This document shows positions 26,359 through 64,000 of a stretch of DNA of 64,000 bases, piece after piece. The DNA is taken from positions 35,092,001-35,156,000 of the forward strand of contig OZ241826.1 in assembly GCA_965202585.1 (NCBI GenBank). Reading direction: 5' to 3'. This stretch comes from Thalia democratica. Its lineage: Eukaryota. The notes below the pieces were generated by a model, which saw only the letters and a program-made list of their open reading frames with translations, searched no databases and was not told the origin of the DNA. A program made the position numbers and the translations under genes. Within the stretch, counting starts at the first letter, position 1. The number at the start of each line of letters is the position of its first letter.

Positions 26359-26524
26359 TTACTCTTTCAAGAACTTATTTTACAAACTAATTTTCGGTCA
26401 AAGACCTCGTCAGTGCTTAAATAAATCTTATTCAAATAGAATTCTATTTGAACAAGACTTATTTAACCACTGACGAGGTCTTTGACTGAAGCTTAGTTTG
26501 TAAAATAAATTCTTGAAAGAATAA
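26359..26524. repeat. 166-bp near-perfect palindrome containing two inverted hammerhead-like cores
   Basis: Centre GAATTC at 26439-26444 with 83-bp arms and few mismatches. CTGACGA-GGTC(TTT)GACC-GAAA on the minus strand and CTGACGA-GGTC(TTT)GACT-GAAG on the plus strand (from 26470). Confidence 0.9.
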
Positions 26525-33800: not shown

Positions 33801-33975
33801 ACTCTTAATTTTTACTAGAATTAAGTATTTAAGTAAATAAATGTTTTTAGCTGATACTACAGAAGATGAATTTGTTGATCCTCAATGTAGGAAAGTCCTT
33901 TTGACTTTTATGAAGCCTCTGAATCAGGAGCAACTTTCAAGACAGTATCAGAAACATTTTTCAAGGTTACTTTAA
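27890..33975 (+). CDS. Coiled-coil protein, CCDC183 / ODAD3 (CCDC151)-like (outer dynein arm docking complex family), 626 aa
   Basis: 12 phase-compatible GT-AG exons: 27890-28007, 28446-28651, 28852-29022, 29536-29637, 29918-30043, 30654-30876, 31222-31370, 31655-31806, 32323-32552, 32677-32891, 33360-33423, 33851-33975 (1881 nt, ATG to TAA). The segment KISRTKTKYYTAQRINRWYELVIDQLKTQCRNLPSMIEKTEQEL..DREER resembles the conserved core of CCDC183/CCDC151 (recalled similarity, not searched). Confidence 0.75.
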
Positions 33976-35946: not shown

Positions 35947-37154
35947 AAAAAACTTGCAATCACAAACCTAAAAAAGGTTTATCATGTGTTAATCCTTTTG
36001 TTAAACTTGAGCTTGTCTCACAGCATACAAAAGAGGCTTCTGCTCCGTAAACTTTCGCCGATGTTTTTGTTGATCAAAAACTATCTCTAACTTACTATTT
36101 GCTAATTTAAAAGCTTAAATCATGGTTATGGTCTAAAAGATAACTTTAAAACTTTTTTTTTAAGTAGGCGCCATTACCCTTTTAGGGTATATTTTGGCTG
36201 TCGAAGGATTTCAATTATAAGTAATTTTGAAACCCTGGTTTAAAAAGACTTCTTTTTTTAGCAATGCAAAGTAGATTTATAACATTCAGACTAAGACAAC
36301 ATCCATTAAGTTGTTTTGAGCATCACTTTAAAATATTTCAAACTTAAGAAATTTATCTAATTGAGTTTTACCAAAGTGTGCAATATTGCCCATCGAAGTG
36401 ATTTCGGCTATCAAGTAGCAATAACTATTAAAGAAGCGAAAAGATTAAAAAGGTAGTATGTTTTAAAGGACAGGGTATTATTTTAAATTTCTGCAAAGGG
36501 GAGATTATGAAAAGTAGTTTTGATCTAATTACCTTTGGGCCACATTTTACGGCCTAGTTTTTGCCTAAATTTTTTATTCCATGATTCTATTAAAAAAACA
36601 AAAAATTGTATTATTTTGTGACATAAAACTTATTTTTGTTTTCTTCATTCTTGAATGAAATTATCCCTTTGCTATTTTTAAAATAATGCTACTTTATACA
36701 ACCTTTTTACTTATACAACTCTTTTTATTTTTGATTACACTTTTACCTTTGCAAAGTTCAAACTTTCCGAAAACCACTACAACTCAAGAAACATTCAAAG
36801 AAGCTGGTATGGAGAAATACATTTTGGTCATCAGTCAATCAGCTAAATACCATAAAGTTTTTAAAGTTATAATTATCATATACATTATATAACAAAGTAA
36901 AACAGCTTTCCGTCCACCTTTAAGTCTAACCAAGTACGAATCAAAACAAATCGTTTTGATGAAAACAAAAAAAAATGATATTTTTTAAACTATAGCGTTT
37001 TCACCCAGTCACCTCGCAATACCCGTATACTTTCCCGGCGCGTAGTTTTAGACCCCACATTTAAAAAACGTTTAAATAATAGAAAACCAACCAAAAATAA
37101 CTGTTTTGACAAAAAAAACAGACGCTCTTTTTATTCATTTGTTTAATTTATTTT

Positions 37155-38434
37155 TTACGGTATTTCAAACTCGCAGAGCCCGTATATTTTCGCAGGCCAT
37201 TTCGATTCGCTCCCGTCACACTTGGAATCGGCCATTTTTCCGTCGAGCCATACAAAGACGCAGTTTTCCCGCTTTTTGTAATCCTGATGGTTCGTGCCGT
37301 CATATCTATAACCCCCGTTGTTCGGCTCCCCTTGCTTCCAAGAGAACAAGTTGCCCGCCCTGAAAAAATTAAACTGCATAAAACCAGAATTGGCATCACT
37401 TAGTTTACAGATAAATTTGACATAAAAGTTGCGAAAGTAAGAAGGCGATTAGTGGAGAGATTTCCCTAATAGCTTTCTTGCTATGAAACTCTACTGGTCA
37501 AAATTTTGTCGAATTTACTTTGAAAACTAAACTTTCAAACTAATTAGCCTGTTTTCTTAATTGTTTGCGCAATATCGAAACGTTTTATTCTAATAATATT
37601 TTATTAAAAACTGATGATCTTGTTAAAAAGGAGTGATTACAAAATATACATTTAAAGCGACTTTAAAACAAGTATTAAAAGACTCAATTGCGCTACAGTG
37701 TTAACGCAGTGTTTAAAACTACTGCGTTACCAAGCGTTGAAACTCTATTTTCAGCAAGATTTAAACTTCAAAAAAACCTTCTGGTGTCGAATACTTCATT
37801 GGTCTTAATTTTTCTCCATTGACCTTCCCAATACCTGTCAGTCAGTCCAATCCAAAGCTTGTCTCCTGCATAAAGTAGCTTTGTCCTGAGCTCTCTGTTT
37901 GTTGATTGGTTTATTAGTGAGTCGAAAGTATTTTGTCGGAAGAAGTATCATACAAACTAGTGGTTAACAGGATCCGGATGTTTTAAATTGAGATCACATG
38001 TGGATAGCTCATACAAAGTTAAAAATTGCACGCTGAGCTTTATTTATATTAGGCATAAGCTCTCTGACTCTATGTTTACTATTGATCTTAAATTTTCACG
38101 TTACTTTGAGTGTTTTGTAAGTTTCGTTTTCGTTATTAAGTATACAGTACTTATTGTAAGAAAAAAAAACCTAAAAAACTTTTATTTTGGTAAAATCACT
38201 AGAAAATCACTAAGCATTTTGAATTCGCATACAAACTCAATTTAACAGACAGAACAATATTGACTTGCTGCCAACCAAAACACTAGTTACACAGCAATGC
38301 AACTAACTTGTGATATTCCTTGCCTTCCGGTCCCAACACGTCGGAAATGAGGTCGCCACCTTCAACTTGGCAGCCTCGTCGCACGTTGTCGTATGCGCCA
38401 TGTACTGGTATGATTTTGAACCTGTATCTCTTCT
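37155..38434 (-). CDS. Terminal C-type lectin domain (3 exons) of the multi-CCP gene, EPN motif
   Basis: Spliced: KRYRFKIIPVHGAYDNVRRGCQVEGGDLISDVLGPEGKEYHKELRTKLLYAGDKLWIGLTDRYWEGQWRKIKTNEVFDTRRAGNLFSWKQGEPNN..RENCVFVWLDGKMADSKC..YGLCEFEIP*. WIGL, EPN and the canonical Cys pattern are present; splice phases 1/2/2 match. Confidence 0.92.
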
Positions 38435-41400
38435 CTGCAAATTCACCGCAATTAAATGCCTGTTTAGCCTACGTACGATTAGTAGCAAGTGCAGCTTTAA
38501 ACAAAGTAATGCCACAAACTGTTTTTTTCCACAGTTTAAGCAAAGTAGTGTTTTAATTTAAAAGCTGTGTTGTGAAAGTGTTAAAAAGTTGGCCGAACTA
38601 AAACAAAATGTACAGCATTAGAACAACGTTTGTAAAAAATCAAAAAAATGGCACAAATTAAAATGTTTAAATAAGTTTAAAGAAAATTCTGTATTTGAAT
38701 AAAAACTAATTGTAACATCAACTATCAAACCAACTTGTTTTGCACTTGACGGCTGAAACGTCAACTTGACCACCTGTGCAAGTCGCCGACTGTTTGGTGG
38801 CTGGGAGGTACCCGGATTTGCACTGGTAGTCGACCTTGGTTCCTTCGTGGGGCGGACTCTTACCGTTGACGGTGCTGGTGGCGTGCTCAACCGCGGGAAC
38901 TACCCAGCAGACTGCGCGAAAAAAAAGGTTAAAACCGAACGGTCTGATACAAGTGTTAGTTTTGAGCAGCTGAGGAATGCTAAAGGAAAATATTAAATAA
39001 AATTTTCGAAATTTTAAAATGAGTGATTTATATACAAACCGACAAAAACTAGTAACAAAACGATATTTTTAAAAAAGGCAGCAAGCGTCGCGATCTAAAA
39101 CAATCAGCACATAAATACAGGGTTGCCACTGGTTTTTGAGAAATTTCGTACAGATTTAATGAATTTCTACCAGGTTTTTGAAATTACAAGTTTTTAGGTA
39201 TATTTTTAGTTTAAACTCAAGTTTAAAAACAGTGTTAAGTAGCATTACAACATTGAAAAGATACTGTAAAGCTACTCTAAATGTGGTCTTAACAAAAATA
39301 AAAATAAATTGATGATGACAAAGTTTTTTTTATTCGTATGATGTAATTTTTGTGCCAAATGAAAAATTGACAACTTAAAATGTAAAAACTGTTTAAAATT
39401 CCAGGTGTTTCCAGGTTTTTTAGTGATTTTGTTAAAAACTCCAAAAATTTCTCAAATTCCAGGGTTTTCTAGGCTTTTTTGCCTAAGTTCTAAAATTCCA
39501 GGTTTTTCCAGGATTTTTGGTGATTTTGTTAAAAACTTCTAAAATTTCTCAAATTCCAGGTTTTTCCGGGATTCTAGTTTTTGTGGCAACCCTGTAAATA
39601 GCACGAACAATTAATTAAAAAAACGACTTTTAGCAAACGCCGAATCTTTTCCAGCTCCACAACTACTTTTATAAAAAGCATCACTATTATTATTAAAATA
39701 ACATCTTGTACTTGAAAAAAAAATTAAACAACAAAGTAAAAAAAACCGACTTCTCTGGCAACTGCCGTACACATTCCATTTACTTGTACCCTGCTTATCT
39801 CTGAAGCACTGCACATAAGCGTTGTCCCGTGAAGGCCGGTAACCGTTGTTGCAATAGAAGGGGATTTTTTCTCCAAGGGTGTACTTGTTGGTCAATTTGT
39901 CTTTGTATCTTCCACCGGTAGGACTTCTGGAAGGTGGCCCGCAGACTGTGTAAATATTTTTAAGTGTTTTGAACTATTAATTTGAACTTATTTTGATTGT
40001 TTATTATGTTATGGATGAAAAAAACTAGTTAATATTTGTAACGTTGTAAAAAAGTACAAACAGATTTGAAGAGCTCACTGCATGTTAAAACTGAACGAAA
40101 CTCATTGTGCAAAATAAAATAAACAAATTTGGTGCTCAACATATCACAAATGCAAATAACTACCTGCTTTTTTATCAAAACGAAAATGCTTTATTTACGA
40201 CTTTCAAAGTTAGTAGAAGGCATAAAACAACAAGTTTATTTTTTTAACTATTATACATGTGAAGTTTAGATAAACTAACTATGATCAAAATAAGTTTTAA
40301 TCAACTAACCTATTTCAGCGCACTTTGCTAAACCTTCTGAATTTAAAGTGTAAGTTCCATCACTTTTACACTGTGTTGAAAGCTTATGAGAATTGACTCC
40401 ACGAGCTAAGTATCCAGACTTGCATTTGTATTGCACGACGTCTTCTTCTAAATATGTCTCTTTTTTGTTAACAATTTCTCCATTGTTGATTTTTGGTGGA
40501 GCAAAACATACTGTTGATTATCAAAAAACAACTAAATTGTTAGTGAAAAAAATGGTTTTTCTTCAAAAAAAGCATATTTAAGGTTTTACTAATTTGATAC
40601 AAAACACCTATAAGTGCAAAAAACTTTATCAAAACTTCAATAATTTGTACTTGAAAAAACAAACTAAACAACAAAGTAAAAAAAACCGACTTCTCTTGCA
40701 GTAGCCGTACCTATACCACCAAATTTGATCCTCGCCTTTGTCGCAAAGCAAATGAGCGTCCTTTCGTGAAAGCCGGTAACCGTTGTCGCAACTGAAGTAG
40801 AGTTTTTCTCCGGCGGTGTAAACTTCTCTCAATACATCTTTGAAACGTCTGCCAGGTGGATTTTCGGCAGGTCGCCCGCAGACTGTTTAAATATTTTTAA
40901 GTATTTTGAACTATTAATTTGAACTTATTTTGATCGATTTTTTTATGTTATGGATGAAAAAAACTAGTTAATTTTTCTAACGTTGTAAAAAAGTACAAAC
41001 AGATTTGAAGAGCTCACTGCATGTTAAAACTGAACGAAACTCATTGTGCAAAATAAAATAAACAAATTTGGTGCCCAACATATCACAAGTGCAAATAACT
41101 ACGTGCTTTTTTATCAAAACGAAAGTGCTTTATTTACGACTTTCAAAATTAGTAGAAGGTATAAAACAAAAAGTTTATCTTTTTAACTATTATACATGTG
41201 AAGTTTAGATAAACTAACTATGATCAAAATAAGTTTTAATCAACTAACCTATTTCAGCGCACTTTGCTAAACCTTCTGAATTTAAAGTGTAAGTTCCATC
41301 ACTTTTACACTGTGTTGAAAGCTTATGAGAATTGACTCCATGAGCAAAGTATCCAGATTTGCACCTGTATCGCACGATATCACCAACAAATACACGCTTA

Positions 41401-44400
41401 TTTTTGTTAACAATTTCTCCATTGTTGATTTGTGGCGGTGCATCAATACATACTGTTGATGCAAAAACAACTAAATAGTTGGTGAAAAAACTATTACTTA
41501 GTTTTATAAAAGTATCTTCAAGGTTTCACTAGTTTACTTTAATTTTTAATCATGCAGTTAAAAGGGGTTGCAAAAATGTATTGTTGCATTTTAAATTGAA
41601 TAGATATGAAAAAAACTGGAACTTTTAATAATGGTTAAAACTAAGTAATACTTTTGTCGCAAGTTCCGAAGTCAAGCTTGTCCGAGGGGTGATTGCAAGT
41701 GTAAATTCTTCCAGTTTCTTCTCCTATTTTCTTGGAATAAGCGAAGCCGTGGTAACAAGTGTAACGCGCTTTGGTTATCAACTCTCGGTTATCGTCGATC
41801 CTGTGCGGTCCGTCCAAAATTGTTCGAGTTCCACGATCTTTCGGAATCAATGGGAATTCACCGCAGTCTAGAATAGAAAAGGTGAGATTACTTTTTGGAC
41901 TTTTTAGCTTTCAACAATGCATCTAATGACTTTGCATTTAATAGCAACGAGCATCTAGTTTGTTTTATTTACTGAGTTTATGAGATAAAAACGAAACAAA
42001 CAAAATACGGTTTAAACAAAACACTAAAAATTACTTGTTTTGAATATGAACAGCGAAACCTTTCAACCAAGTAGTAAATTTAGATCAGAAAATACATTTA
42101 GATTAAATTTTTCTTTAAACACAAAAGTTTGAGCGTGTAAATATCTTAAACTTCAATCCTAGTTTGTTTAGTACATTGTAGACACTATTGACACTTGCGT
42201 TTGCTTTAAAACTTAAAAAAAGCAAGTGTATGATTAAACCTGGTTTACAAGATGCCGTCGTGTACAGGGTCCGGGTAGTGAGTGGTCGCCACTGACCGTC
42301 TGCGCCACAAACGATTCCCTTGTAATACGACGGCGCTTTCACGTAGCCGGGCGTGCAGTCGTACATCACTTTAGTCCCGGGGATGTAGTGGGGTTCGTAT
42401 ATCCAATCGACTTGCACAATGGAGTACTCCAGACTTTGAAAAGTGTATTCTTCGCACCGGACGTCTAAAGGGTTGTGTTTTTGATAAAACTAGCTTTGCT
42501 AGGTTGAAATGTCATACTTGTCAGTCATATGACCATCACTTTAAAAGCACAAAAGTCTGTTTCTATGCTTCTAAAAAAAATTACTTTTTAAACATGAAAA
42601 AAAATTACACTCAACTTAGCTAGGACACCATATATCACAAAAATCATTAGATGTAAAAAAGCGAAAACAAACTGGGTACACAACTGCCGAAATCCACGAT
42701 CCACTTTCCGTCTGCACCGCAAGTAATTTTGTTTTTATTTTCGGGTAAAAGTGAGTAACCGTTGTTGCAAGTGTACTCTACGACTGCACCAGGCAAGTAT
42801 AAATCTTGTGGGTCGAAAGTTGCTTTTGGAAGCTGTGGTGGCTGTGGGCATTCTGTTATAAAACGTAAAAACAGTTAAGAGCAAAAATGAAAATTATTGG
42901 AAATAAAAACACGTCTTTTATAAAATTTAACAAGACATGTCGGATATTTACCAGGTAAGCACTCAGGGGGGTCAGGCTCGAACACAAAAGTCGTTGTGCT
43001 GCATTCAACTCGATCGACTGCTCCCGGTCGCATTGAATGAAAATTGTGGCAGGTGTACACCGCCGTTTGCGGAAAGTTTCTTAGGTAGTAAAAAAAGTCG
43101 TTGAAGCTGATACCGAAGAGACTTCTATCGATCGACCCCTTGACGCTCCCGTTCGGTATTTGAGCAGGTTGGCCGCAGTCTGTCAATAAGTACGCGTCAA
43201 AAAAAGTGTATGAGAAAAAACTGAATGCTGTTTGAAACAATTCAAACTTGGAACGCAAATGACTTGAGGAGACCATCTTCCCTCCGAGTTGCAAGTCACC
43301 CGCGTGTACTGAGAGGCGTAGTTCATGTTGCAAGCGTATATAATCAACGCCTTGCGCTTGTAATAGGTCACTTTGTCTTTTACGAACGAATCAGCCATTG
43401 GCAAACTCTTTTTGGTCAAATCAACCCAAGGCAGACCCCCGTTCGAGTTCGGAACCACGGGTTTTTCACCGCAACCTGAAAGTTTGGTTTTCACATTAAA
43501 AAAAAAAATTGAACGCCAGCAAAAAGCGTATGGGTCGAAAACAACCTCTGAGGCACACAGGTAGCTTCGGTGGCGACCAAAAATTTCCGGACGCGTTGTT
43601 GGTGCACTCGAAGACGCTGTTGTTCGGGTCGTCGATGTAGTAGGTTCCGCTGCACGAATACTCCACGTGAGACCCGTTTATCGTGGTGACTTCCGAGTTG
43701 GCCACGATCGGTGGAGCTTGGCACTCTAGTTTAAAACGTTCACCTTTCAAACTTTGCCATTATTTAACTAGTGCTTAACTTTTTACAAATGTAGTTTAAA
43801 AGCTTACATCTTTCTTTTATTCTGAGGGTTTAAAGTTGTAATTTATTTAATTATTTTTGCCTTAAGAAATACAAACTAGGAACGCAAGTTGGAGCTGCGT
43901 CGTTGTCCCAAACCGCATCCCTGGTGCAAACACGTTCCAAATTGTACTCTTCGGAGGTTTGCCATTCCACATTGTAGCCGGCATTGCACTCGTACTTCAC
44001 TCTTGTGTCAGTCCAGTATTCACCAACAATGTGCGTGAATAAAATTTTATGCGATGACCTATCACTTTCGGGTGGACTCGGGCATTCTAAAATCATATTT
44101 AAAATTAAGTATAAGAAAAATAAGCTTTAAACAATGCTTAGATATAACAAAATCACCTTTGACGCAGATTGGAACTTTTGCGTTGCTCCAGCTGCCGTCT
44201 TCTCGACATTCGTAGACGTAGTCCGTTTCGACCCCCTCGTGAAACTGGAAACCCTTATCGCAACTGAAACTAATGACGTCACCGCTCAGGATGTGATCCT
44301 CGCGAATTCGGGTGATGCTCATCGTGCCGTTCAAAATTGCGTCCAGAGGCGGGCATTCTGTTTAGTTGCAGTTTAGCTTCTCGTTCAGCTTATTAACTGT

Positions 44401-47400
44401 AGAACAAAAGTGAAAGGCTTACATACCTTTTAGACATCTTGGCTGAGTCACCAGATTGCTCCATCCGTCAGCACCGCAAACGATTTCGCTGAAAGAAGTG
44501 GAAAGCTTGTAGTTGCCTTGGCAAGTAAACTTGAAACTCGTTCTATAAGCTGTGTAGCTCGGCGGGTAAGATTGGAATACTTCAACGTTTCCGTTTTCTA
44601 TGGACATGGGCAATTCTGGTGCACATGCTACAGAAATAGAGCAATATTACATGTCATTATTAACATTTGCTGACACCAAAGCTATTCAGTATTTTTAACC
44701 AAAAAAGATTAAAAAATAAATATATAAGCACTGTCTGATTAACCTACGCTCATTGAGAAGGTTTAAACGATTTTCAAGTTAAGATGTGCTTGAGATTTGA
44801 AAACAAACTACATTTAATTAAGAAATGGTCCTTTTTTTAAATAAGTTTTAACCTCACTGCTACTTAGTGATCTAAATATTTCACATAGTTGAAAAACATT
44901 TACTAAAACTAAATTTAAAAACTAAAAATTTGCAAACTGCAAGACACGCTCAAGTGCAAGTAAAGCTGAAAGCTTGTAAGTACTTACACGGCACGCATTC
45001 TCCGATATCGCTGTCGTATGCACCGTCGGCGGTCTGCTGGCAGTTTATGGTGGTCGTTTTACCGCCGGTCCAGAAGAACGAGTTTTTACAACTGTACGAA
45101 ACTTGCAACTCGATGGAGTAAGTTTCGTTAACCTTCACGCTTTCCGTAACATTCTTTTCACCATTTTTAACTTCGGGAAAGTTTCCACAATCTGAATTAT
45201 TTTGAAAATAATTTATTCCAAATTAGAAAAACTCAATAAACCTTTATACATAAATGTAACAATTAAAAAATGTTTGACTAATAACTTTAACTAAAGTATT
45301 TCAATTGTAATATTTCAAAATAATATTTAAACATAAATTTTACATGTCAAACAAAAATATGTGAATAATTACAGTTTACGAGCAGTCATTGCACGATCAA
45401 ACACACTGACAACAAAATACAATTGGTGGCAAGTTTTCACCTCTAACACATTTTCCTCTTTCACTCCAACTGGCAAAAGTTCCTCCCGTCTCAAGCCTGA
45501 ACTGCCCGTACCAGAACTTTAAACAGACCTCGCCGTAGAAGCTGTCCAGGGCCATGGTGAAGCCTTCGTGGCACTGCCATTCAATGTACGTGTTGCGCAA
45601 ATACACGCCCGGGAACACCCACCTCACCACTTTGAAATCCGCGTTTGCAATCGGCGCAGGTTCTTTGCACTCAATGTCTGAAGATTGTTAAAATCATTAC
45701 ATGGGCGAGGGTTTTATGGTTGGTAAAAAATAAGTACGGAGTTTGTTTTTATGGACAAGCACTTGACTTTTTATTAATCCACCGGTAAAAAATATTAATT
45801 TGTTACTTACTTATGTAGCACTTTCCTCCTTCAGGCTCCCATCTTCCATTACCCATACAAAACTTTTTCTTCTTCTCCACCGGCAAGAACCTTTGAAAAT
45901 GACAAGTGTAATCGACACTCATACCTACCAAGTAAGCTCCGACGTGGTTCGTTACAGTTAGGCTGTTATAAACGAGGTGTTCGCGCGTGTTTGGAATTTT
46001 TGGAGGGGGGCCGCAATCTAAAAAGAACAGTTGGTATACCTGGGTGAAGTGTTGTTGCATTTAAGTTAATTCTACATTGTAATAAAGATGAGTCTAAAAA
46101 ATCATTTAAACTGTTGTACTTTGAAGTATTTTTCACCTTTTAAACACGCGAGCGCCGGTTCAAAATTTCCGCTTTCTCCGTTGCACGTCGGAACTTCTTC
46201 TGGCGGTTGCGCGAACCCGTAACCGTTTTCGCACGAGTATTCGACTTTGTACGGCAGAACGACCGTCGACCCGTTGACTAAAATTTCGTTGTTCGACACC
46301 GTGACGTGATCTCCATTGTCAATAGGTTCCGGCTTTCCGCAGTCTGAAGTTTAAAACAACACTTTTTGTTTGTCGAACAAAACTAAATGATTTACTTGAA
46401 TATTATTCAGTGATCAAAATACTTGGTACGCAAGTGGGAAAGGCTAGTTGCCATTTTCCATTGGGAAGACACTCGTTTGTATCTAATGCTGAGTCGCTGA
46501 GTGAGTAGCTGCCTTCACAAGACAGCCTTATCACAGTGCCGCTGAGAAGTAATCCTTTTTCTGTCGCAGTGTCAACACCGAAAGTAAGAGGCAATTTTAT
46601 TTCACCGCTCGGACACTCTGCAAGAAAAATAGTCTTTTTTAACGATTTGTGAAAAACAACACTGAAACTGAGTGACACAAGTACAACCCAACCCGTTTTA
46701 AATACAATTTACACTACTCTGTTTTATAAGATGTTTAATAAGACTTTTTTAACTAAAGTAAAGTAGTTTGCCAGAAATTAAACTATTTGCAAAGTATAAT
46801 AAGTTAAAAAAATACTTCAAAATTTCACAACTACACAAGAAAACCTTTTTTTTTAATCTTTAAATATATCCTTAAGTAAAGAGAACAACCTTTTAGACAT
46901 TGAAACTCAGTGTAGGTAAAATCGCCACCATTCGCACAAGTGTAAGTTCTACTGGCAGTCGATGGGGTGCTTTTGTAATCTTTGTCGCAAGTGTACCGAA
47001 CGACGGATTCCAGCACTGAACCGTCGCTCAAAGTAAATGAGCTGACGACTTTCTTTTCTGAGTTTAGAATGCTTGGCGCCGTTCCGCAGTCTGTACATTA
47101 ATACAACAGTACACTAAAAACGTTTTGTTTATTTTATTTAAAAGAACAAACATGCTTCATTTTATAAAAACTAAACTACTGTATGTATTAAAATGGCGTT
47201 GTAGTTGAAAAAAACCTACCAGGATAACATTTTACTTTTCCAGACCAAGTACCATCAACACCACAGACAATATCTTTTCCATCTTGTCTGTAATTATTAA
47301 TACAGGTGTATGTAACTGTTGTTCCGTTTACATAATTTCCCTCTTTTTGAACTGGAGTTGAATATTCGTATCCGGAGTTCTCAACCGTTGGCAACGAATC

Positions 47401-53400: not shown

Positions 53401-56400
53401 TAAGATTTGATACGCTTTGGTAAAGTACGATTTTTTATTACTTAAGAACATTTCTATTTTTTAAACGATGCAGGAATGAAGTGACACGGCAGTAAAATTA
53501 CGAGACAGATAACTGCTGAGAAATATACACACATAAGAATATTAGACTGAAAGTTTTTAAATTATATTTCAAAACTGTATGAAACCTGGATAGCAGTCTG
53601 CCACTGGACTCCAAACGCCACTCATGTTGCAGTGCGTTCTAAAATTGACAGAAACGTGGGCATCATCGCATATCAACTCGACATCGCTGCCCAAGAAAAA
53701 CACATTTTCTTCAACGGACGCCACCGAACTAAACAGTCTGTTTTTGTCGCTGTTCTTGATCGATGGCAGCTCGTCACATACTGAAAAAGTAATTTGAATT
53801 ATTTGGCGCACGTATTTTTTGGTTTATCTAAAACTTTATTTAAATAACGAATATGATCAAACTATTGTTTAAAGTAATAAACACTATTGATATTTTTCAT
53901 GGTCGTAAAAAAGCTTATCTTAAAGTATTTAATTAAACCTTTTTTGCATGTGGGAAGATTAATGCTTGCAGGCCAACCGTTACCGTACGAGCATTCTACC
54001 AAGGAAACTGTGGAGTCTGCAACGATGGAGTAGCCGTCGAAACAAATGTACTCGACTTGCACGTAAATCGCTCCTAGAGCCTCAGTCGAAACATCTTTTC
54101 GAAACTCATATCTACCGTAGTCAATGGTAGGAACTATTTCGCAAACTGTAGAGTAAAAGTTAGAAGAAGCTATTAGAAAATAAACAAGGACAAGTTTAAA
54201 CTTCTTATGCAATTTTAATAATGTAAACACTTCAATATATTACAAGAAAGCTTGGACTTGAAAATTATTTTTAAAAGATTTTTTTTAATCAGGTGAAACG
54301 AAAATACAAACAACAACAACCTTGAACGCAATCAGGCGGGAACTGCGGGATCCAGCTTCCGTTCCCCTGGCAAGTGAGAACGTTCGACCCGTTCCCGTAA
54401 AACACGTGGAAGTAATCGCAAGTGTACTCGATCCGCGCTCCCGTCAGAAGTCGGTTGTTTAGCGGCGAGTGTAAAAGCTGCCACGAAGTTGCCACTCGTT
54501 CGGGCGGGTTCTCGCATTCTGTGCGAAGTTAAGTATTTTGAATGTTAGTTTATATCGATATTAGAAGCATAACTGTGTTTGGAGCTTAAGACTTTGTGTC
54601 ATCGTAAACTACTTTTATTATCTACCGTTGTTTAAAAGTAAAAAGGTAATAATCAAGTTCAAAGTACATATAAAAGCGTTAAACACTCAAAAGGTGTACA
54701 AGTCGTAATCAACTGCAAACCTTTCAATGTTTCGGAGGGGCACGTTATTGCTTCAGTCCACTCTCCCCCCTTGCACTCGATAGTTCCAGTGATGGCCGTT
54801 TTGTTTGCATAGCCGTTTATGCATTGGTAATTGAGAACGGCCCCGTATAAGTACCTGTCAACGGGGCGTTCTTCGTACCTACCGTACGGTATGACTGGGG
54901 GCTTGCTACAATCTGTAATAAGGACCGATGTTCTCTTAAATTTTACGAGGACAACTTTTAAAAGCATATAAAGAATGAACACGCTGGATTCATATGTGAA
55001 TTAAAGCTAACAATGTTTGAAAAAAAAATATTAATTTTTGTTTAACTAATGTAAAATTGCTTGTCAAAACACAACAGAAAACAATTGAGTACCGGGGGCG
55101 CACTCGGGAGCCGCGTAATTGTCCCACACGCCGTCCTCGTTTTCAGCGCCGCAAACTCGCCTGTCAACCTCTCCTTTCAGGAACGTGTAGCCGGGACGGC
55201 ACGTGTACAAAACCTCCGTGAACGTCCAGTGCTCGTTCTCGAAGTGAGTGAACTCTATTTCCCAAGTGCTGAAGTTGCTGCTGGGCGGAGGGGGACATTC
55301 TGCGTGTAGAAATTTAAACGGTATGAAAACTGCATTAATATTTAATGGATGCGATTTAGAACATGGGTGAGTAACCTGCGGTCCGCGGGCCACTTCTGGC
55401 TCGCCAACAGAAATCTCTGATCTAGGGCGTACTTTTCGGTTTGAAAACATCTCTTGTGGAAATACAAAAAAAAATACTACATAAAAACAAGCTCTCATTT
55501 TGTTTTTAGTACACAATAGCGTTAATTAAATGATTACTATTTTACAATTTTACCCTGTAAACATTTTCTTAAATTTAAAATATATACTTTTTATTTTTAT
55601 GCAGTCGCTAAGACTTTTATTAAGCTTGGCCCAAAAAAGGATTTTTTTCTAATAAAACTAGCCTGCCTGTTAGAAAAGGTTCCCACCCATGCTCTGCAAC
55701 AACGACTTTACTACCAAGTTGCTCTATTTAATAAAAAAAAAATTGAACCGGTTATGCACAAAGGATTTCTGCTGCTGTTCCAAAAACCGCTTTCCTTGCA
55801 CCAGTACACGTAGTCGCCGTCGCTTCCCGCTGCAAACTTGTACCCGTCCTTGCAAGTGTACTTCACCAGGTCGCCGCCGACGAAAGCGCCCGGCCGGAAC
55901 TGCTTCAGTATTTCGATCACGACGTTGTGTCCGTCTCGGAACGGACATTCTGTGAGAAAGTTGCTGTTAGCTTGTTGTTTCGGAATTGAGAAAGATACAG
56001 TTGAGTTAGTAAGAACCTATTTTTTTCAAGGACTTGAGCCAAAACGTTTTGTTTTTTTTTTTTTTAGCAAACTATAAAAAAGTTGTAATGTTTTTAAGTT
56101 AAAAACTTCAAGTATTACTTAGCAAAAAGCATGAATAAAAGACTAATTATTTATGAAAAATTTTCTATCGTAGGTACTTAACAAAAAGTACTGTTTACAT
56201 ATCTAAAGACAGCTTACAGATCAATATAAAAGTACAAAAACTGTCTCACGTCTCAAGCATTTGGGGTCGAGGTCTTGGTTGTCCCAAGTGCCGTCGGCCT
56301 GACAAGTATACTCGTTGTTTTGTGACGACAGCACGTGACCGGGGCCGCACTGGAAGGTGACGATCGCGCCCGCCACATATTTGTTTATGTCCGACCTCGG

Positions 56401-59400
56401 GTGGGCGTTCACGATGATTTTTCCCCTGTAGAGAAACCTGGGCAGAGGTGGGCATGCTGTGCGGAGTAGCTTCATTTAACATGGAATGTTTATATGTTAC
56501 GTGGTATTTATGAACAAAAAAAACAATCAGCTGGAACGCTTATCAAGTTTTTTTAATGAAAACTAAAGTTTTGAGCTTCAACAAAAATATTTTATAAAAC
56601 AAATGAACGATTTTAATTTTTTATTTCTGCGTAAACAACACATGATAGCTGGAAAATTGTTTTGAATACTTCTTAAAATATATTTATACAATGACGAAAA
56701 ATCTTTATACAGAATAATTATACTTTAACAAACGTTCTACAACATTTTACAGAAACATACTAAAAAATCTCACCATTGACACAGCGCCCAACACCGTTGT
56801 CGAAGCCGCCTTCAACGCAAGACACGGTGGAGTTCGGTAGAGTGTAGAAGAGCCACCTGTGGCAAACGTACCTCACGCTGACGTCCACGGAGTAAGTTTC
56901 GTTGATCTGTTTAGTTCTCACCACTTCCTTTCTCCCGTTCACAACGTCAGAAAACGGCGGGCACTCTTCAAAGATGCATGACGTTTTAGTTTAGAAAGTT
57001 GACAGCGGTGGTATTAAAAATAAGCTAAGGCAAAACAAAATAAGCTAAAGACCAACGTGAGATAATTATGCACTGTAAAAATGTTTATAAGGAAAAAATA
57101 AAAAAAAACGGTAGCTTTAATTACCTCTGACACACTTGGGGTTCAAATTTTCGCCGTTCCACTCGCCGTTCTCCCCGCATAAAAACAAAGAGGTGTCCGT
57201 TGAGAGAAAGTAGCCCTGGTCGCACTTGTACGAAACTACCATGCCGAAAACGTTCACGCTTTCTCTTGGCCTCGCCTCCACTGTTGCTGTTCCGTTTCCT
57301 ATGCTTTCGGGCACCTCTGGGCACGCTGAATGATATAAAAAATAGTTTAGAAAAAAACAGGTACAAGTTTAATAAAAACTATGCATAAGTGGCTGGGAAG
57401 TATTTTTCATTTAATCTATAGTTTTAGAAAAGTCAAGATTTTCCAACCATATACATTTTTATAGAAAGCTTATTTTTTTAATCTTGTTGTTCTCTAGAAG
57501 TAATCTACAGAAAAGTAGAAAATCTTAAAATAAACTTCAAAAAACTGTACCCTTAACACAGTTTCCAAATTCCAACTCTCTGCTGGGATCACTGCAAGTA
57601 ACTACATTGCTGTCTCTCGAATAAATGTACCCTTCAAGACAATAGAACTTCGCAGACAAAATTAAAAACTTTTTGAACGACACCAATCTCACATCTTTGT
57701 CCACTCTGGCTCCATTTTCTACTGATGGCCAGTCTCCACAATCTGAAATTAATTCATATGTGTTGGTAAAACCGTTAAGGAAATTAAATTGTTAAGACTC
57801 ATTGAAAACAAGTTTTTTTATTAATACTGTAAAAGTTTTTTGTAAATTATTGATTGACTTAAATTTTACATAGCAAAGTAAAAAACTTGAAATATGTGAT
57901 ATTAGCTACAATGAAGTTGCTACACGTATAAAACTTACATTGTCATGACATACAATAAAAATATTCGAAACATAAAAACAATGTCAGGGTTGCCAAATGT
58001 TATTGGAAAATTTTCTCCAAGTTTTCAAATTTCTTCCAGACTTTAAAACTACACGTTATAGGGTATATTTTAAGTTAAAATTAAGTTTAACGTAAAAAAC
58101 TGTGTTAAATAGTATAACAAAGTTGAAAACATATATAAAAACTTCTTTTAATGTGTTTTTTAACAAAAAAAATTTGATGATGACAAAAAAACTTTATCTG
58201 TAGGATAGACTTTTTGTGACTAATCGAAATTTTACTAAACATGTAAGAGTTGTTTAAATTTCTAGGTTTTTTTCAAAATTTCACAAATTCCAGGTTTTTC
58301 AAGGTTTTTTTAACGCTAAACTAACAAATTCAAGGGTTTTCAGGATTCCAGGTTTTTTGACAACCCTGAATGTGTTCTAAAAGATTTTGAGCAATTTAAG
58401 AAAACAGACTCAAGAGATTTAAAGTTTTAACTTTTTGCTAAACTAAAGTAAGTTAACCAAACCTGGCAAGCAAGCTCCGGTCGTGAAGCCTGGTTCTGTG
58501 CTCAGCGCTGTGTATTTACCGTCAACACCACAAACCAGCCCCACGTAGTACTGCGGCGCCATGACGTACCCGCTGTTGCAGGTGTAATTCACCTCGGTGC
58601 CGGGCAGAAAAACGTCCTTGAAGACGACTTTTTGAAGTCGGGTGACGGCGTAGTCCATCTCAGGCGGGCTTTCACACTCGATTTCTACAGTGAAAGTTGA
58701 TGTTTATCAAAAAAAACTACATTTTATTCTCCTAACTAAAAACTTTTACAAACTGAAGGCTCATTTCAAACAATGAAACTTTAACCGGAGCAACCTCAGT
58801 AAAGCTTAAAACCAACGGTTCTAGATCTTTCTTTCATGTTTCACCCAAAGTAATCAACAAATTTTAAAACTAAATAATGTTATTCTAACCCGAGTAGCAG
58901 CCGCCAAAGTCTCCGGACCAAGACCCGTCGTCGTTGCAAGTAATCGTGTCTTCGTTCGCGGGTAAAAGCCTGTATCCGGGAGAACAAGTGTAGGTCACCG
59001 ACATTCCGGATAAATACCTCTCGTAAACAGTGTGCGCTCCATTCTCAACTTTCAGCGGTTTCGGACACTCTGTTAAATTTTGAAATACATGTAGTAATGT
59101 TTTTGACTTTTTAAGTTATGTATGTAAAAATCTTACCAAATTAATTATATTTTTAAAGTAGAAGCAAAATTAAGCAAATACTTTTCAACAAAATACTTGA
59201 ATAAAACTTTAATTATGTTGATTAAAAAGTTCTTAGATTTTTACAACAAATCTTAATATTTTTTTTTACTTAATCTTAAAGTGGTGGTGGTATACTTTAA
59301 TCTTTTAACAACTTATATAAAAACTAGCTATATGATCAAAAATATTTCAGCATTAACAAAATATAGATATTAAAAAAAAAATTTGAAATAATATGTTGTA

Positions 59401-62400
59401 CTTACCGCGAAGGCATTCAGGTGAAGACGGCTCAAATTGACCGGTGCCTCCATTGCAAGTTAAAACTTTTTCTGCGGAAGGTACCGTCGCATAACCTTTG
59501 TTACAGCTATATTCTACCATTTGTTGAAAAGCTTTCATTATACCATTGACCAAAACTTCAACCTCCAAGTTAATATCGAAGAAGCCGTTTTTAATGGTAT
59601 CTGGTGACTTACAATCTGTTCATTTATAGTATATAAACCTTGTTGTTCTTTTTTAATTTTGCTAACACTTCATAAACTACTTACTTGGAACACATTCAAC
59701 CACAGGAGTCCATTTTCCATCGACACCGCAAGTTGATTCCGTGTGGCTTTGAACGTAGTTTTGGCCGCATTCAAACTCATAGATCGTACCACTCACGTAG
59801 CTACCTTCCCTCGATTCGTCATTTATCAACGTGGCTTTCGCGTTTGGCACGTCAGGTACGTCCTCGCAAACTAAAACGTTTTATTGTTTTTCACGACCAA
59901 AATGCGTTATAATAAAACATTTAGCAACCTTTCAAACACACGGGCAGCTTCGACGGCCTCCACACGGAACCAAATTCGCATGTCAACACGCTGTTTGTTT
60001 CATCATCAATGTAATACCCCGCGTTGCAGGTGTACGTCACAGTGCTTTCGGCAACTTCACCGTTGGACAGCGTCTCCTCACTCGTGGTTATTCCGCTGTT
60101 TGCCACCGTCGGTGCGGCTTCGCAAACTGGTAAAATTTTTAACAATATTTTAATAGGTTATTTATAACAAATTTGTTCAGACCTTAAGTAAGACCATTAA
60201 AATTTCTACTAATACAAGAACCAATTTTGAAAAGTTTTTTCAGATACAATTTAAGTCCTAAAAAAGCTTCCTAAAGGTATTTTATAAGACATTTTTAACT
60301 CCAAAGGCAGCTGTTTTTGATCTTAGAATTATTTTTGTGTAAAAACTAGCAGTATTAAAACTGTTTCGTGAAGTTAATCTTTGAAAAAGAGCTTTTTGAT
60401 TTACCTGGAACGCATCTCGGGGCGGTGCTGTCGTCCCATTGTCCATTTCTGCCGCAGACGCGAGTCGCTTTGGCACCGAACAGGAAGCTGTGCATGGGCT
60501 CGCACTCGTAAGTCAGCTCCGTGTCCGTCCAGTACTCGTCGTTGATGTGCGTGAACGAGATTTTCCTCGACACGAAAGCGGGGAGCTGGGGTGGATCGGG
60601 GCACCCTTGAAAATGGTCAAAAAAAATTTGAACTTTAATATTTTGAGCAATTTTCATAAGCTCTTCGCAACCAAAATGATTATTTACAAATAATAACTTT
60701 AAATTTGCATTTATTACTTCCACATAAATTAATCATAAAAGTTTTGTTCTTCTATTAAAAGGTGTAAGTTTAAAAAAAAAACATAGTGTAACATATGAAT
60801 ATGTAATCTTCCTTTTGACTACGTAAGCAATTATTATAAAAAAGCAGCTTTCTGTTTAAACTGGTACATCTTAAGTACGCACTTCCTCTTGAGTACGCTT
60901 TTTTTTTACTGTGTTCAAAGTGCACAATCAAGAGGAAGATTACTGTGTGTAACAAACAAAACTTACTGGTTATGCAAAGTGCTGTTCTCTTATTGTCCCA
61001 AGAACCGTCTTCTTGACATTCGTAGCCGTAATCGCTTCCAACGCCTTCGTGAAACTTGTAGTTTTCATCGCATTTGTACTCGAACCTATCACCAGCTAGA
61101 TTGCGTCCGGGCAAAATCTGGTTTGTTATCACTATTGAGCCATTCAAGACGTCTAGTATGTCAGGACATTCTGCAAACAGTATTCAAGTGTAACATTGTC
61201 AGCACTGGTAAGAAAAAGAAACGACTAAAAAAGGAAAAGGTCAACAAACTGATTACTTAAATTAAAAGATAGAACGAGTCACAAACTGACACTTTAATTA
61301 GTAACAATGTTTTTCAAATTCAGCATACTTTCTTACTCTACTCACAACACTTATGTTTTTATGTTACCTTTCAAGCATCTGGGGTTGATGTCATCGCTGT
61401 TCCAAGTGCCGTCAGCATTTCCGAAAAACTGGGAAGTTTCGGTTGAAAGAACAAAGTCTTCCTCGCACTCGTACGTGATGTTTGTTCCGACCACGCTGGT
61501 GTTCTGTCTCGGTTTATCGTTCACAATCACCCTTCCGTTATCTATTGATGTGGGTAGTTCTGGCAACTCTGTTATACGTTGGCTTTTAATGGTGTGAACA
61601 AAAATAAGGCTGCGAATTAAATTAAGACATTAGTACTGATTTATTTTATGTGCGAATGCAAATTTAAGAACTTGATAAATATAGGGCAGTGTAAAAAAAC
61701 TATGGACTTTATAACTTCAAAGTAGTAGAAGGTAGTTTTTTTTACTCAAAATTTAGATTATCTATAATCACTTGTTACTAAAACCTGTATTTTAACTAAA
61801 ATGTATTACACTATAAAACACTTAAACATACAGTGTGCTATATTTATTTGAAGACTTATACTTTATCCTTGCAACTTATTAATCTTCCAACCAAAATGAT
61901 GTAAACATTTTACATGCCACCATAATGCAAACCTACCTTTAACGCATCTTCCAACTTTATAGTCCAAACCGTCAACACCGCAGTTTATAATCGTCGGGAT
62001 GTCCAGACTCCAAATGAAATTTTCATTGCAAACGTACTCAACGCTGACTTCAATCGAGTAGGTCGAGTTCTTCACTACCGAGTCAAGTAAAACCTTTTCG
62101 CCGTTGTCAATTGATGGAAACTTTCCGCAATCTAAAATCAAACAGTTTTATTACATCAAAGCTTAGTGATTAAGTAGAACAGTGGTTTTCAAGAGAATCA
62201 AAATAAGGGCACCTTAAATTGCAAAATTAAAATTCTGTGTACTCCAATGTGCTAATTTCTAGTATAAGTTTCAAATTTCCCGTAATATCTAGTGTATGGT
62301 TTCCCAAACTATTTTCAAAAGGCCCAATTTTGGCCCCTTCCAATAAGATTTCTTAAAAAAATACCATAAAACCACCTAAAGCCATTTTTTGCTCCTCATC

Positions 62401-64000
62401 ATCAACTCCAGAATATCTAAGTAAATTTTCAGATTATGGCCTTGTGGCCCCCTAGATTTCCTATTTTTTTTCATAATATCTAGTATAAGTTTTAAAACTA
62501 CCACTAAAACGCCTAAAATCTTTTTTTTTTTAATAACCTAGTGTAAGTTTTTATGACATCATGGCTACCATGTGGTCCCTTTAATGCTCAGTTTCGAAAA
62601 CTCTGATCTAGTTAACTTTCAAAAATGATCGCAATATCCAGTGTAAGTTTCAAAATTAGCTTTAAATTCACCTGAAAACAACCTTTTTTTTACTGTTTAT
62701 CATGAACTCCAGCATATCTAGTTTAAGTTTCAAAATTTAGGATAATTTTTCAAGTTAGGATTCATGCACCCCAAAATAAATTTTGAAGTAGTTTTGAAGA
62801 CCACTGAACTAGGTTATGAAACGCATTGATTGTATGAGTATTCTTAATAGAGAATGTAGCATTTATATCCACAGAGAGCTACACAATGAAGATGCCAATA
62901 TAAACAAAAACATAACTGTTAATTTACTAACTTATATACTTGTGATTACTGTGAAAGCATAAAACATTTGTAAAGTAAACAATTCAATAAATCTTTAGTT
63001 TTAATTTAAGTACTGTTTACACAACTAAAATCAACCTCTGACACATTTTGGCCTCTGACCGTCGGCGGGGTAGCTCCACAGTCCGTTGTTTTCGCAAATT
63101 CTCCTCCCGGTGAAGGAATCGGGGGTCATGGTGAGACCTTCAGCGCAAGTGAAGGTGATCTCGGTGCCGGACAAGTAGACATCTTTGTACACCCACTTTG
63201 TTACTTCGTACGTGGCTTCCAAAACGGGCGCGGGCGACAGACATTGGATTTCTGAAATGTGGTCAGTTTGAAGTTTTGTTGTAGGTAGAATGTATAATGT
63301 ACCTTTCAAAAACTACCAACAGGCTTGTTTGCCCAGTTTAAAACTTTAAAGATATAAAACAATTTGGTAAAGTAAATTTTATATTTTCAAATCATAGTTT
63401 TTTAAGAAATTGTAAGTCTTAAATAGTGTTTAGTTCTCAAACATTTAATTAAATAGTACAGAAAGATTGCATTCTGTTATTAGAATATAGAGCCCACCTG
63501 TGTAGCATTTTCCTACTTCGCCTTCCCATGAGCCTGCTTCACTGCAAACAAGCTCGTTATCTTCTGCAGGCAAAACTTGATGGCCGGCTGCGCAAGCAAA
63601 AATCAAAAGAGTGTTTACCGTGTAAATTTCGTCTGACTCATTCATAGTGACTTCCACAGTAGTGTTTGGGTAGCTTGGAGGGCCACCACAATCTTTGTAA
63701 TTTATTGTTTTTATTATAAGTGCTTTATTTGTCGTGAAAACTTAAAGATACATTGATAGTTTTATATAAAATAATAGTACTCCTATTGTGAAAGTATTAA
63801 TTTTTTACATTTACCTTTGAAAATTATACACACTCAGAATAATACTCTTCCAATTGAAAAATTAGTTTTTTGTTACTGTAACAAAGTTTTTTACTATCAT
63901 CATCACTTAACACTACCTAAAACGCATTGCGGATAATCCTCCAGCATTTCGGGTCCGAACAAAAATTGCGAGCTGTTTTTTCCTCCAACGCAGGATCCGT
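37155..64000 (-). CDS. Giant multi-Sushi/CCP protein with C-terminal C-type lectin; >=58 CCP domains, ~4,000 aa in window, N-terminus beyond the right edge
   Basis: Phase 1-1 exons, one CCP each (C..P.i.NG..Y.C..Gy..C..G.W..C), in transcript order: 63917->64000 (partial), 63498-63692, 63036-63251, 61937-62131, 61368-61568, 60967-61170, 60405-60605, 59929-60126, 59685-59870, 59406-59615, 58890-59069, 58463-58684, 57551-57742, 57125-57325, 56774-56965, 56250-56456, 55749-55949, 55093-55299, 54721-54912, 54321-54518, 53939-54145, 53586-53780, 53004-53207, 52674-52868, 52266-52499, 51961-52158, 51696-51899, 51455-51640, 50968-51168, 50468-50665, 50070-50267, 49650-49844, 49347-49535, 49071-49280, 48517-48696, 47727-47924, 47462-47665, 47220-47405, 46890-47090, 46423-46617, 46137-46343, 45811-46017, 45441-45677, 44988-45191, 44427-44627, 44157-44357, 43877-44086, 43546-43725, 43248-43475, 42952-43179, 42673-42852, 42240-42464, 41652-41867, 41249-41452, 40691-40882, 40310-40510, 39751-39945, 38735-38911; then lectin exons 38308-38434, 37778-37894, 37155-37359. 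Every complete CCP exon length is a multiple of 3 with GT-AG ends. That all exons belong to one transcript is inferred. Confidence 0.9.
39118..39594. mobile_element. Intronic MITE with CAGGGTTGCCA TIRs and internal TTCCAGGTTTTT repeats
   Basis: TIR CAGGGTTGCCAC / GTGGCAACCCTG; 6-bp direct repeat TAAATA on both sides; internal ~97-bp tandem duplication at about 39400-39570. Confidence 0.85.
39707..41535 (-). repeat. Two-exon tandem duplication (~940-bp unit) within the multi-CCP gene
   Basis: Introns 39946-40309 and 40883-41248 are about 95% identical by eye; exon pairs 39751-39945/40691-40882 and 40310-40510/41249-41452. Confidence 0.92.
46423..52158 (-). repeat. Five-exon module duplicated at 46423-47924 and 50468-52158
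   Basis: Same exon order in both blocks; near-identical short introns (47406-47461 vs 51641-51695, 47666-47726 vs 51900-51960) and exons (LNELKSETLLSGET; QKEGNYVNGTTVTY). Confidence 0.85.
55362..55691. mobile_element. Intronic Charlie-type hAT MITE, 330 bp
   Basis: TIRs CATGGGTGAGTAACCT / AGGTTCCCACCCATG; subterminal gcggtccgcgggccac; TSD not conserved. Confidence 0.65.
57985..58368. mobile_element. Second copy of the CAGGGTTGCCA MITE family (intronic)
   Basis: TIR CAGGGTTGCCAAA / TTTGACAACCCTG; 5-bp direct repeat AATGT on both sides; TTCCAGGTTTTT motifs; internal similarity to 39118-39594. Confidence 0.8.
62180..62806. mobile_element. Intronic hAT-type MITE with an internal array of ATATCTAGTGTAAGTTTCA motifs
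   Basis: TIRs CAGTGGTTTTCAA / TTGAAGACCACTG; about 6 degenerate motif copies at 62257-62735, the reverse complement of the core of the 13354 and 23551 MITEs. Confidence 0.7.

Follow-up and report, generated by a model that had tools for sequence, protein, structure and literature searches.

Gene structure at the locus

The 64,000-nucleotide (nt) stretch analysed here (the window) is C1:35092001-35156000 of the 801-Mb Thalia democratica assembly GCA_965202585.1, C1 being contig OZ241826.1. It holds the 3' part of a minus-strand gene, modelled as encoding a short putative signal peptide, an unbroken chain of 71 Sushi-type complement control protein (CCP) modules and one putative C-type lectin domain at the C-terminus. 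All coordinates are window positions, and the numbering runs on past 64000 into the 100 kb that were fetched beyond the window end.

At its flanks the window is very AT-rich (22-29% G+C). From ~36 kb onward the G+C content is 32-41%, and nearly all long stop-free segments with at least four cysteines lie on the minus strand. Searches for the cellulose-synthase-linked families GH6 and GT2, made as an independent check on the tunicate origin of the genome, produced no match or one weak match interrupted by stops. CCP modules were searched for with a hidden Markov model (HMM) built from the window's own CCP-like segments and refined over several rounds. This identified 70 CCP units between 38724 and 77278 of the extended sequence, every one of them on the minus strand, the plus strand having none; a 71st (CCP66) lies below the reach of the HMM and was detected via the orthologous exon of a paralogue. 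Together with one start exon and three lectin exons, these units make up a gene of 75 exons spanning ~41 kb (Table 1).

Each CCP exon encodes a single module. The exons start 2 nt before the first cysteine (Cys I) behind an AG, and mostly end two residues past Cys IV plus one base, followed by GT, so that the introns are all phase 1-1. GT-AG borders are present at 74 of 74 introns, the last lectin junction having been shifted by one base relative to the RNA contig alignment to give GT-AG. When the exons are joined, they form a single open frame with a coding sequence of 14,760 nt (4,919 residues) and no internal stops, and no exon of a non-CCP type was found in the chain between the start exon and the lectin. 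An earlier reading of the window alone (the original prediction) had reported at least 58 consecutive Sushi/CCP exons, no other domain or stop between them and a largest intron of ~900 bp. These features are borne out: 57 CCP exons lie wholly inside the window and a 58th, CCP14, is truncated at 64000, the frame is uninterrupted and made up of CCP-type exons only, and the largest intron within the window measures 904 nt.

Table 1 Features of the CCP-lectin gene and its two paralogues
Feature	Position	Strand	Remarks
Start exon E1	77981-78026	minus	beyond window; ATG at 78026
CCP1	77092-77280	minus	beyond window
CCP2	71525-71716	minus	beyond window
CCP3	70976-71167	minus	beyond window
CCP4	70491-70691	minus	beyond window
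CCP5	69472-69660	minus	beyond window
CCP6	68842-69042	minus	beyond window
CCP7	67519-67713	minus	beyond window
CCP8	66801-67004	minus	beyond window
CCP9	66380-66577	minus	beyond window
CCP10	65989-66189	minus	beyond window
CCP11	65717-65905	minus	beyond window
CCP12	64689-64904	minus	beyond window
CCP13	64354-64548	minus	beyond window
CCP14	63917-64150	minus	3' part 63917-64000 inside window
CCP15-CCP65	42240-63692	minus	51 single-module exons of shared stalk; basis: own HMM, splice model, Pfam checks, positional orthology to C9 and C5
CCP15	63498-63692	minus	
CCP16	63036-63251	minus	
CCP17	61937-62131	minus	
CCP18	61368-61568	minus	
CCP19	60967-61170	minus	
CCP20	60405-60605	minus	
CCP21	59929-60126	minus	
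CCP22	59685-59870	minus	
CCP23	59406-59615	minus	
CCP24	58890-59069	minus	
CCP25	58463-58684	minus	
CCP26	57551-57742	minus	
CCP27	57125-57325	minus	
CCP28	56774-56965	minus	
CCP29	56250-56456	minus	
CCP30	55749-55949	minus	
CCP31	55093-55299	minus	
CCP32	54721-54912	minus	
CCP33	54321-54518	minus	
CCP34	53939-54145	minus	
CCP35	53586-53780	minus	
CCP36	53004-53207	minus	
CCP37	52674-52868	minus	
CCP38	52266-52499	minus	
CCP39	51961-52158	minus	
CCP40	51696-51899	minus	
CCP41	51455-51640	minus	
CCP42	50968-51168	minus	
CCP43	50468-50665	minus	
CCP44	50070-50267	minus	
CCP45	49650-49844	minus	
CCP46	49347-49535	minus	
CCP47	49071-49280	minus	
CCP48	48517-48696	minus	
CCP49	47727-47924	minus	
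CCP50	47462-47665	minus	
CCP51	47220-47405	minus	
CCP52	46890-47090	minus	
CCP53	46423-46617	minus	
CCP54	46137-46343	minus	
CCP55	45811-46017	minus	
CCP56	45441-45677	minus	
CCP57	44988-45191	minus	
CCP58	44427-44627	minus	
CCP59	44157-44357	minus	
CCP60	43877-44086	minus	
CCP61	43546-43725	minus	
CCP62	43248-43475	minus	
CCP63	42952-43179	minus	
CCP64	42673-42852	minus	
CCP65	42240-42464	minus	
CCP66	41652-41867	minus	
Stalk/tail junction intron	41453-41651	minus	similarity to paralogues ends ~41605
CCP67	41249-41452	minus	
CCP68	40691-40882	minus	
CCP69	40310-40510	minus	
CCP70	39751-39945	minus	
CCP71	38735-38911	minus	last module, joined directly to lectin; Pfam Sushi 22.2 bits; RNA splice 38735-38434
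Lectin exon 1	38308-38434	minus	RRGC...GGDLIS, first canonical cysteine; RNA joins CCP71
Lectin exon 2	37778-37894	minus	WIGLTD core; RNA contig
Lectin exon 3	37155-37359	minus	EPN, E-N-C, MAD, Cys 2-4; ends ...GLCEFEIP; TAA 37157-37155
3' untranslated region	37128-37154	minus	very short, two AATAAA; RNA contig end 37128
C9 paralogue	25.77-25.81 Mb		69 CCP exons + three lectin-like regions
C5 paralogue	29.88-29.92 Mb		68 CCP exons + three lectin-like regions

Sushi/CCP modules

CCP modules are expected to comprise ~60-70 residues with four invariant cysteines, paired I-III and II-IV (PMC6683126). Exactly four cysteines were found in 70 of the 71 modules, whose lengths range from 58 to 78 residues. 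The original prediction had proposed a Pfam scan for Sushi and Lectin_C domains. For Sushi (PF00084, gathering cut-off 20.7 bits), 28 exons were run, mainly the 20 weakest by our own HMM; Sushi was the top match in 27 of the 28, and 19 reached the gathering score. Scores of 25-34 bits were obtained for CCP67-70, and no Pfam Sushi match for CCP26 and CCP66. The sole module with two cysteines, CCP18, lacks Cys I and Cys III, that is, one disulfide pair. It nevertheless still scores 25.4 bits, and the loss is common to the paralogues on contigs C9 and C5 described below.

CCP66 is a degenerate sushi-type module with no tryptophan but with four cysteines and phase 1-1 borders. Its counterpart in the C9 paralogue is 64% identical (E 3e-25) and scores 17.7 bits against Pfam Sushi. 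The AlphaFold2 model of CCP66 has a predicted local distance difference test score (pLDDT) of 73.5, and the closest structures in the PDB are single CCPs of beta2-glycoprotein I, CD46 and DAF. These alignments are weak (Z 2.2-2.6, root-mean-square deviation ~2.8-3.1 over 51-54 residues, Foldseek E >= 4), so the model is consistent with a CCP fold without proving it. CCP26 and CCP66 together represent a Trp-less CCP subtype ending in ...TC(S/N)(D/H)PS..L.FG.C.

Linkers between CCPs in chains span 3-8 residues, three being the shortest class (PMC6683126). Here, 59 of 69 inter-module linkers are exactly three residues long, as measured on an earlier 70-module model. The modules are strongly diverged from one another (pairwise identity within the gene: median 25%, 95th percentile 34%). 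When the modules are clustered, blocks containing five to eleven module types are seen to recur, as at positions 9-13, 39-43 and 49-53, at 20-24 and 44-48, and at 16-21 and 56-61, which indicates that the chain grew via ancient segmental duplications. Young internal duplications are seen at two places only, between CCP40-41 and CCP50-51 (84% identical) and between the tandem pairs CCP67-68 and CCP69-70 (78% and 48% identical).

In the second of these duplications (39700-41452), the intron is 95.6% identical and the second exon pair 68%. Positive selection alone was considered for these exons outpacing their introns and was rejected because synonymous divergence in the second exon pair is equally high (dS 0.42, dN 0.40; synonymous and nonsynonymous divergence, respectively). 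The pattern is better explained by recent gene conversion whose tract covers the intron together with the first exon's 3' half. The intron between CCP70 and CCP71 carries, at 39070-39660, a very high-copy repeat with many rearranged joints, for which the summed contig depth in three DNA runs is ~100,000-280,000, compared with ~100 elsewhere.

Paralogues sharing the CCP stalk

At the DNA level, the 5' part of the gene matches contigs C9 and C5 at 75-84%. From 60 kb fetched at each locus, a paralogue was read on both contigs (Table 1), and the start exon is common to all three genes. CCP n has CCP n as its best match at 63 of 65 positions for C9 and at 61 of 65 for C5; CCP66 also has a counterpart. 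Median identity over CCP1-66 is 75% (C9) and 73% (C5), as against the within-gene median of 25%. Over ~4,000 aligned codons, the three comparisons gave dN/dS values of 0.20, 0.31 and 0.19 at dS 0.69, 0.56 and 1.01, and these low ratios indicate purifying selection on all three genes. CCP1-66 thus constitute a fixed, position-specific stalk common to the three paralogues, which no module has entered or left since the genes separated.

The tails are a different matter. In tblastx comparisons with the C9 and C5 tails, similarity extends across CCP66 and ends within the intron that follows, and neither C9 nor C5 has a counterpart of CCP67-71 and the lectin. The paralogues carry three further CCPs and three lectin-like domains, one of which passes the Pfam cut-off, whereas the tail of the gene studied here comprises five CCPs and one lectin. 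Relative to the two paralogues, the two tandem module pairs CCP67-70 occur in this gene only; their nearest relatives are CCP arrays at C4:55.31 Mb and at 96.6-97.4 Mb of C1. The nearest lectin at the protein level is also on C4, a fused exon at C4:55312153 with 40% identity over 111 residues (E 8e-15). It contains EPN and MDD, scores 17.4 bits against Lectin_C and is preceded by CCP arrays of the CCP67/69 type. These similarities show that the last five CCPs and the single lectin resemble the C4 locus and differ in origin from the stalk. Since the tail belongs to another CCP-lectin lineage, the gene is a chimera of a shared stalk and a swapped tail.

The C4 locus itself (C4:55314000-55338000) is a minus-strand CCP-array gene with at least 31 CCP exons, some units of which are spaced 1,119 bp apart, and it ends in the lectin nearest to the one studied here. 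The giant gene is flanked by an inverted segmental duplication of ~14 kb (20388-34223 versus 87001-101204, 81-92% identical), each arm of which contains a RING-H2 finger open frame (22672-22860, plus; 98646-99125, minus).

Probable C-terminal lectin domain

The three lectin exons encode ~130 residues. In the spliced translation, the WIGLTD motif is accompanied by the four canonical cysteines of the fold (in RRGC, ENCV, DSKC and GLCE). By language-model features, the nearest named cluster of exon 3 is Lectin_C (perlucin-type, score 0.88), and Lectin_C accounts for 96 of the 100 named clusters nearest to the closest genomic relative. The domain is likely, though not proven, to have the lectin fold, with the hallmarks of short-form C-type lectins. 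An hhalign comparison of the C1/C4 lectins with the Pfam-positive C9/C5 lectin returned a probability of 9.5%, an uninformative value obtained with profiles of two sequences only. The predicted fold of the C4 relative's partial lectin domain (pLDDT 39.6) is too low in confidence to be used. The sole phmmer match of lectin exon 3 among 1.84 billion representatives, a bacterial Cna_B repeat protein, was rejected as spurious.

The lectin DNA is unique in the assembly. No further lectin cassette was found within 37 kb downstream or 86 kb upstream, and no remnants of a triple-lectin tail were found in the gene flanks. The lectin exons also occur, at ~98% identity, in a second DNA data set that bears the label of another organism.

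Transcripts, N-terminus and predicted product

Transcription and splicing of the gene were assessed with contigs from a marine metatranscriptome. One RNA contig of 591 nt aligns to the minus strand in four blocks (38849-38735, 38434-38308, 37894-37777 and 37358-37128) with 10 mismatches, and it therefore represents spliced RNA joining CCP71 to lectin exons 1, 2 and 3. A second contig splices 40361-40310 to 39945-39751 (CCP69 to CCP70), and a third is an exact match to CCP65. RNA coverage is thin throughout (depth 2.6-12). The RNA 3' end lies ~27 nt past the stop codon, beside the two AATAAA signals, which indicates that, at least in that transcript, no further exon and no anchor follow.

A pattern scan for a signal-peptide exon produced weak candidates only. 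When the 20 kb upstream of CCP1 were compared between the three paralogues, a single conserved block was observed, ~700-900 nt upstream. This block is an ATG exon, MYCGTCQILSVLFNF, followed after one extra base by a GTGAGT donor; its consensus in the paralogues is MYCGTCQI(L/I)S(V/L)LF(N/S)F (15 residues), with a GTGAGT or GTAAGT donor. The donor is in phase 1, matching the phase-1 acceptor of CCP1. Because the encoded peptide is hydrophobic and too short for a membrane span, it is read as a short signal peptide, and its position directly before CCP1 points to secretion rather than to an anchor. A non-conserved exon may lie further upstream. The 27 nt around the start codon (~78003-78030) are identical in the three paralogues despite dS of 0.56-1.0; this stretch is thus far more conserved than the coding exons, suggesting a regulatory or splicing role besides coding.

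The mature chain has a calculated mass of ~546 kDa and an isoelectric point of 4.8, with 56 N-glycosylation sequons. No membrane-length hydrophobic stretch is present, the highest 19-residue Kyte-Doolittle mean in the protein being 1.38. The 288 cysteines are accounted for by the modules (four each, two in CCP18), the lectin (four) and the signal peptide (two), and if the standard disulfides of CCPs and of C-type lectin-like domains (CTLDs) form, no cysteine would be left unpaired. A CCP is ~3.5-4 nm long, and the extended chain of 71 modules would measure roughly 250 nm.

Several statements of the original prediction concerned this product and can now be refined. It had left open whether the protein is secreted or anchored by an unseen N-terminus; the start exon, 14 kb beyond the window, favours secretion, and an anchor is not favoured. 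A rod of ~200 nm had been proposed. The very long rod is kept, as an estimate from module number, but 200 nm is too short for 71 extended CCPs. The described end of the protein, an EPN lectin and a stop without a transmembrane helix or glycosylphosphatidylinositol-type tail, is confirmed as far as the EPN motif, the TAA codon and the lack of a hydrophobic tail are concerned, but the lectin exons, scanned singly, fall below the Pfam cut-off.

Comparison with known systems

The original prediction had assigned this lectin-tipped protein to no named family, proposed an architecture search and called the protein unusual. Indeed, it fits no named family. Database searches retrieved no orthologue from outside this genome; no characterised orthologue was found in database and literature searches, which does not imply that none exists, and no tunicate protein of this design was found described in the literature. 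The protein is nevertheless not unique, since the two paralogues share its 66-module stalk with other lectin tails.

Selectins and Drosophila Furrowed likewise combine one C-type lectin with a run of CCPs that holds the lectin off the attachment point. In these proteins the lectin is N-terminal and is followed by an EGF domain (in selectins), 2-10 CCPs and a transmembrane anchor. Here, in contrast to selectins, the lectin is C-terminal, EGF domain and anchor are lacking, and there are 71 CCPs. In lecticans such as aggrecan and versican, which are secreted matrix proteins of very large size, the C-terminal G3 region likewise sets a C-type lectin beside a CCP, and this lectin binds other matrix proteins and glycolipids. 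Lecticans differ in that the order is EGF-CTLD-CCP, only one CCP is present, and a glycosaminoglycan-bearing core makes up most of the protein. In collectins, including mannose-binding lectin, a collagen stalk and a coiled-coil neck trimerise the lectin; neither is present here.

Complement receptor 1 (CR1) and the family of regulators of complement activation (RCA) have a long, unbroken CCP chain with short linkers, mostly one module per exon, and a history of segmental duplication. The common form of CR1 has 30 CCPs in near-identical 7-module repeats, the number of which varies between alleles, whereas the modules here are ~25% alike, fixed in number and order in three old paralogues, and joined to a lectin end without a membrane anchor. 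RCA regulators carry ordered motifs M5-M3-M1-M2-M4 over three successive CCPs (PMC6683126). SVEP1/polydom and CSMD proteins are also giant, extracellular and CCP-dominated, SVEP1 having 34 CCPs and a mass of 387 kDa (PMC6683126). Their CCPs are mixed with VWA, EGF, pentraxin or CUB domains and no C-terminal lectin is present; the chain described here has twice as many CCPs and nothing else in it. Among tunicate proteins, the oikosins of the Oikopleura house are secreted matrix proteins with CCP and C-lectin domains, and their lectin domains were suggested to hold the cellulose scaffold (PMC3390340). Oikosins, which also contain EGF, VWD and chitin-binding domains, are mosaics of far smaller size; the likeness noted here is one of domain content. 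Many CCP and C-type lectin genes are also expressed by tunicate blood cells (PMC12212465, PMC5465252).

Interpretation and alternative explanations

We favour, with a probability of about 0.6, the explanation that one gene of ~41 kb encodes a short putative signal peptide, 71 CCPs and one divergent C-terminal C-type lectin domain, and that the product is a secreted monomeric tether. This explanation starts from observed features, namely the exon structure, the open frame, 3'-end splicing seen in RNA, and purifying selection. Once secreted, the monomeric protein would form an extended, semi-rigid rod roughly 250 nm long, one end of which would be held on the extracellular matrix or on a particle by the lectin domain binding a glycan, or possibly a protein, there. 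The individually conserved CCP modules would act both as a spacer whose length is set and as protein-binding sites arranged in order, and the place where a given copy of the stalk is attached would depend on its paralogue-specific lectin tail. That tails were exchanged while the stalk stayed unchanged agrees with such a placing role of the tail. From its predicted properties, a glycosylated acidic rod with a lectin-type end and 66 conserved modules would best fit an extracellular tether or bridging molecule, which may act in the matrix or in immunity with no preference for either role.

Several results weigh against this tether model. When the lectin exons were scanned separately against Pfam Lectin_C (PF00059, gathering cut-off 22.6 bits), exon 2 scored 14.9 bits (profile 37-63) and exon 3 15.3 bits (profile 54-100), both below the cut-off, and exon 1 alone had no Pfam match. 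The two partial matches do fall on consecutive parts of the profile and in the right order. Compared with PDB sequences, the lectin has no match at E 0.01, the C4 relative reaching only E 0.7, and word-indexed searches of large sequence collections with the lectin open frame and the C9 paralogue lectin found no relatives. Calcium site 2 is incomplete, with EPN and the Glu of E-N-C present and WND replaced by MAD, and a monomer, having just one lectin domain, would bind sugars only weakly. The start peptide is short and has no charged N-region. Finally, no RNA was found across the stalk-tail junction CCP66-CCP67 or, in the RNA runs, for the 5' part. Continuity of the 75 exons at that junction and over the 5' forty exons is therefore drawn from phase, the open frame and the paralogues.

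The alternative that survives best is a possible, if less favoured, one: the C-terminal domain may have the C-type lectin fold without binding sugar, and serve as a protein-binding domain or structural end-cap, as many CTLDs do. Of five calcium-site residues, one has been lost, N being replaced by A at the WND position, and the nearest relative likewise lacks WND. Because of this change, calcium-dependent sugar binding may be weak or lost. In addition, 17 residues are inserted between EPN and the following Glu, an interval of five residues in MBP-A. Yet EPN and Glu-Asn-Cys are both kept here and in the C4 relative at 40% overall identity, which suggests that the site is under constraint. The original prediction that EPN indicates binding of mannose or GlcNAc was in any case too strong, given MAD here and MDD in the nearest relative.

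It is rather unlikely that the protein is a humoral immune molecule, in which the lectin would bind microbial mannose-type sugars and the CCP chain would bind or regulate C3-like complement components. The EPN motif would suit such a role, complement regulators are built from CCP chains (PMC6683126), and C3, factor B, MASP and putative CCP regulators occur in tunicates (PMC5465252). The replacement of WND by MAD speaks against it, however, as does the monovalent lectin, there being no collagen or coiled-coil domain for oligomerisation. Furthermore, known regulators need 3-4 CCPs, which leaves 66 conserved positions unexplained.

Somewhat less probable again is the suggestion that the locus yields shorter products, that is, a stalk-only protein to CCP66, a short tail protein from an internal promoter, or both, with the 71-module form rare or absent. 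In the RNA contigs, CCP64-65 and the part from CCP69 to the lectin are covered but CCP66-68 are not, and tail and stalk differ in evolutionary origin. Translation running on past the CCP66 donor meets a stop three codons later, where a form that retains the intron would terminate. On the other hand, the end of CCP66 and the start of CCP67 share the same phase with GT and AG sites, and the CCP65-CCP67 interval contains no ATG-initiated exon with a phase-1 donor. RNA is moreover thin everywhere, and a 3' bias is expected for a 15-kb mRNA. It is very improbable that the rods encoded by the three paralogues, fixed in length at 66 modules and about a quarter of a micron, serve as struts or cross-links of an extracellular mesh (the mucous net used in feeding, for instance, or the tunic with its cellulose), a role in which the interchangeable lectin tails would plug into a polysaccharide scaffold and the module number would set the mesh dimension.

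If the tether model is true, the 71 modules would be among the longest CCP chains described, against 30 in CR1 and 34 in SVEP1, and the selectin layout would be reversed, with the lectin at the free C-terminal end. In three old paralogues (dS 0.56-1.0), the order of the 66 modules has stayed the same, with no module lost, gained or homogenised, even as the lectin end was replaced. This fixed order over three paralogues argues that the modules are not interchangeable beads; it would be explained if either each module had its own partner or the length itself were selected. With three stalk-plus-tail combinations in an animal near the vertebrates, these genes would offer a natural system for studying the function of very long CCP chains.

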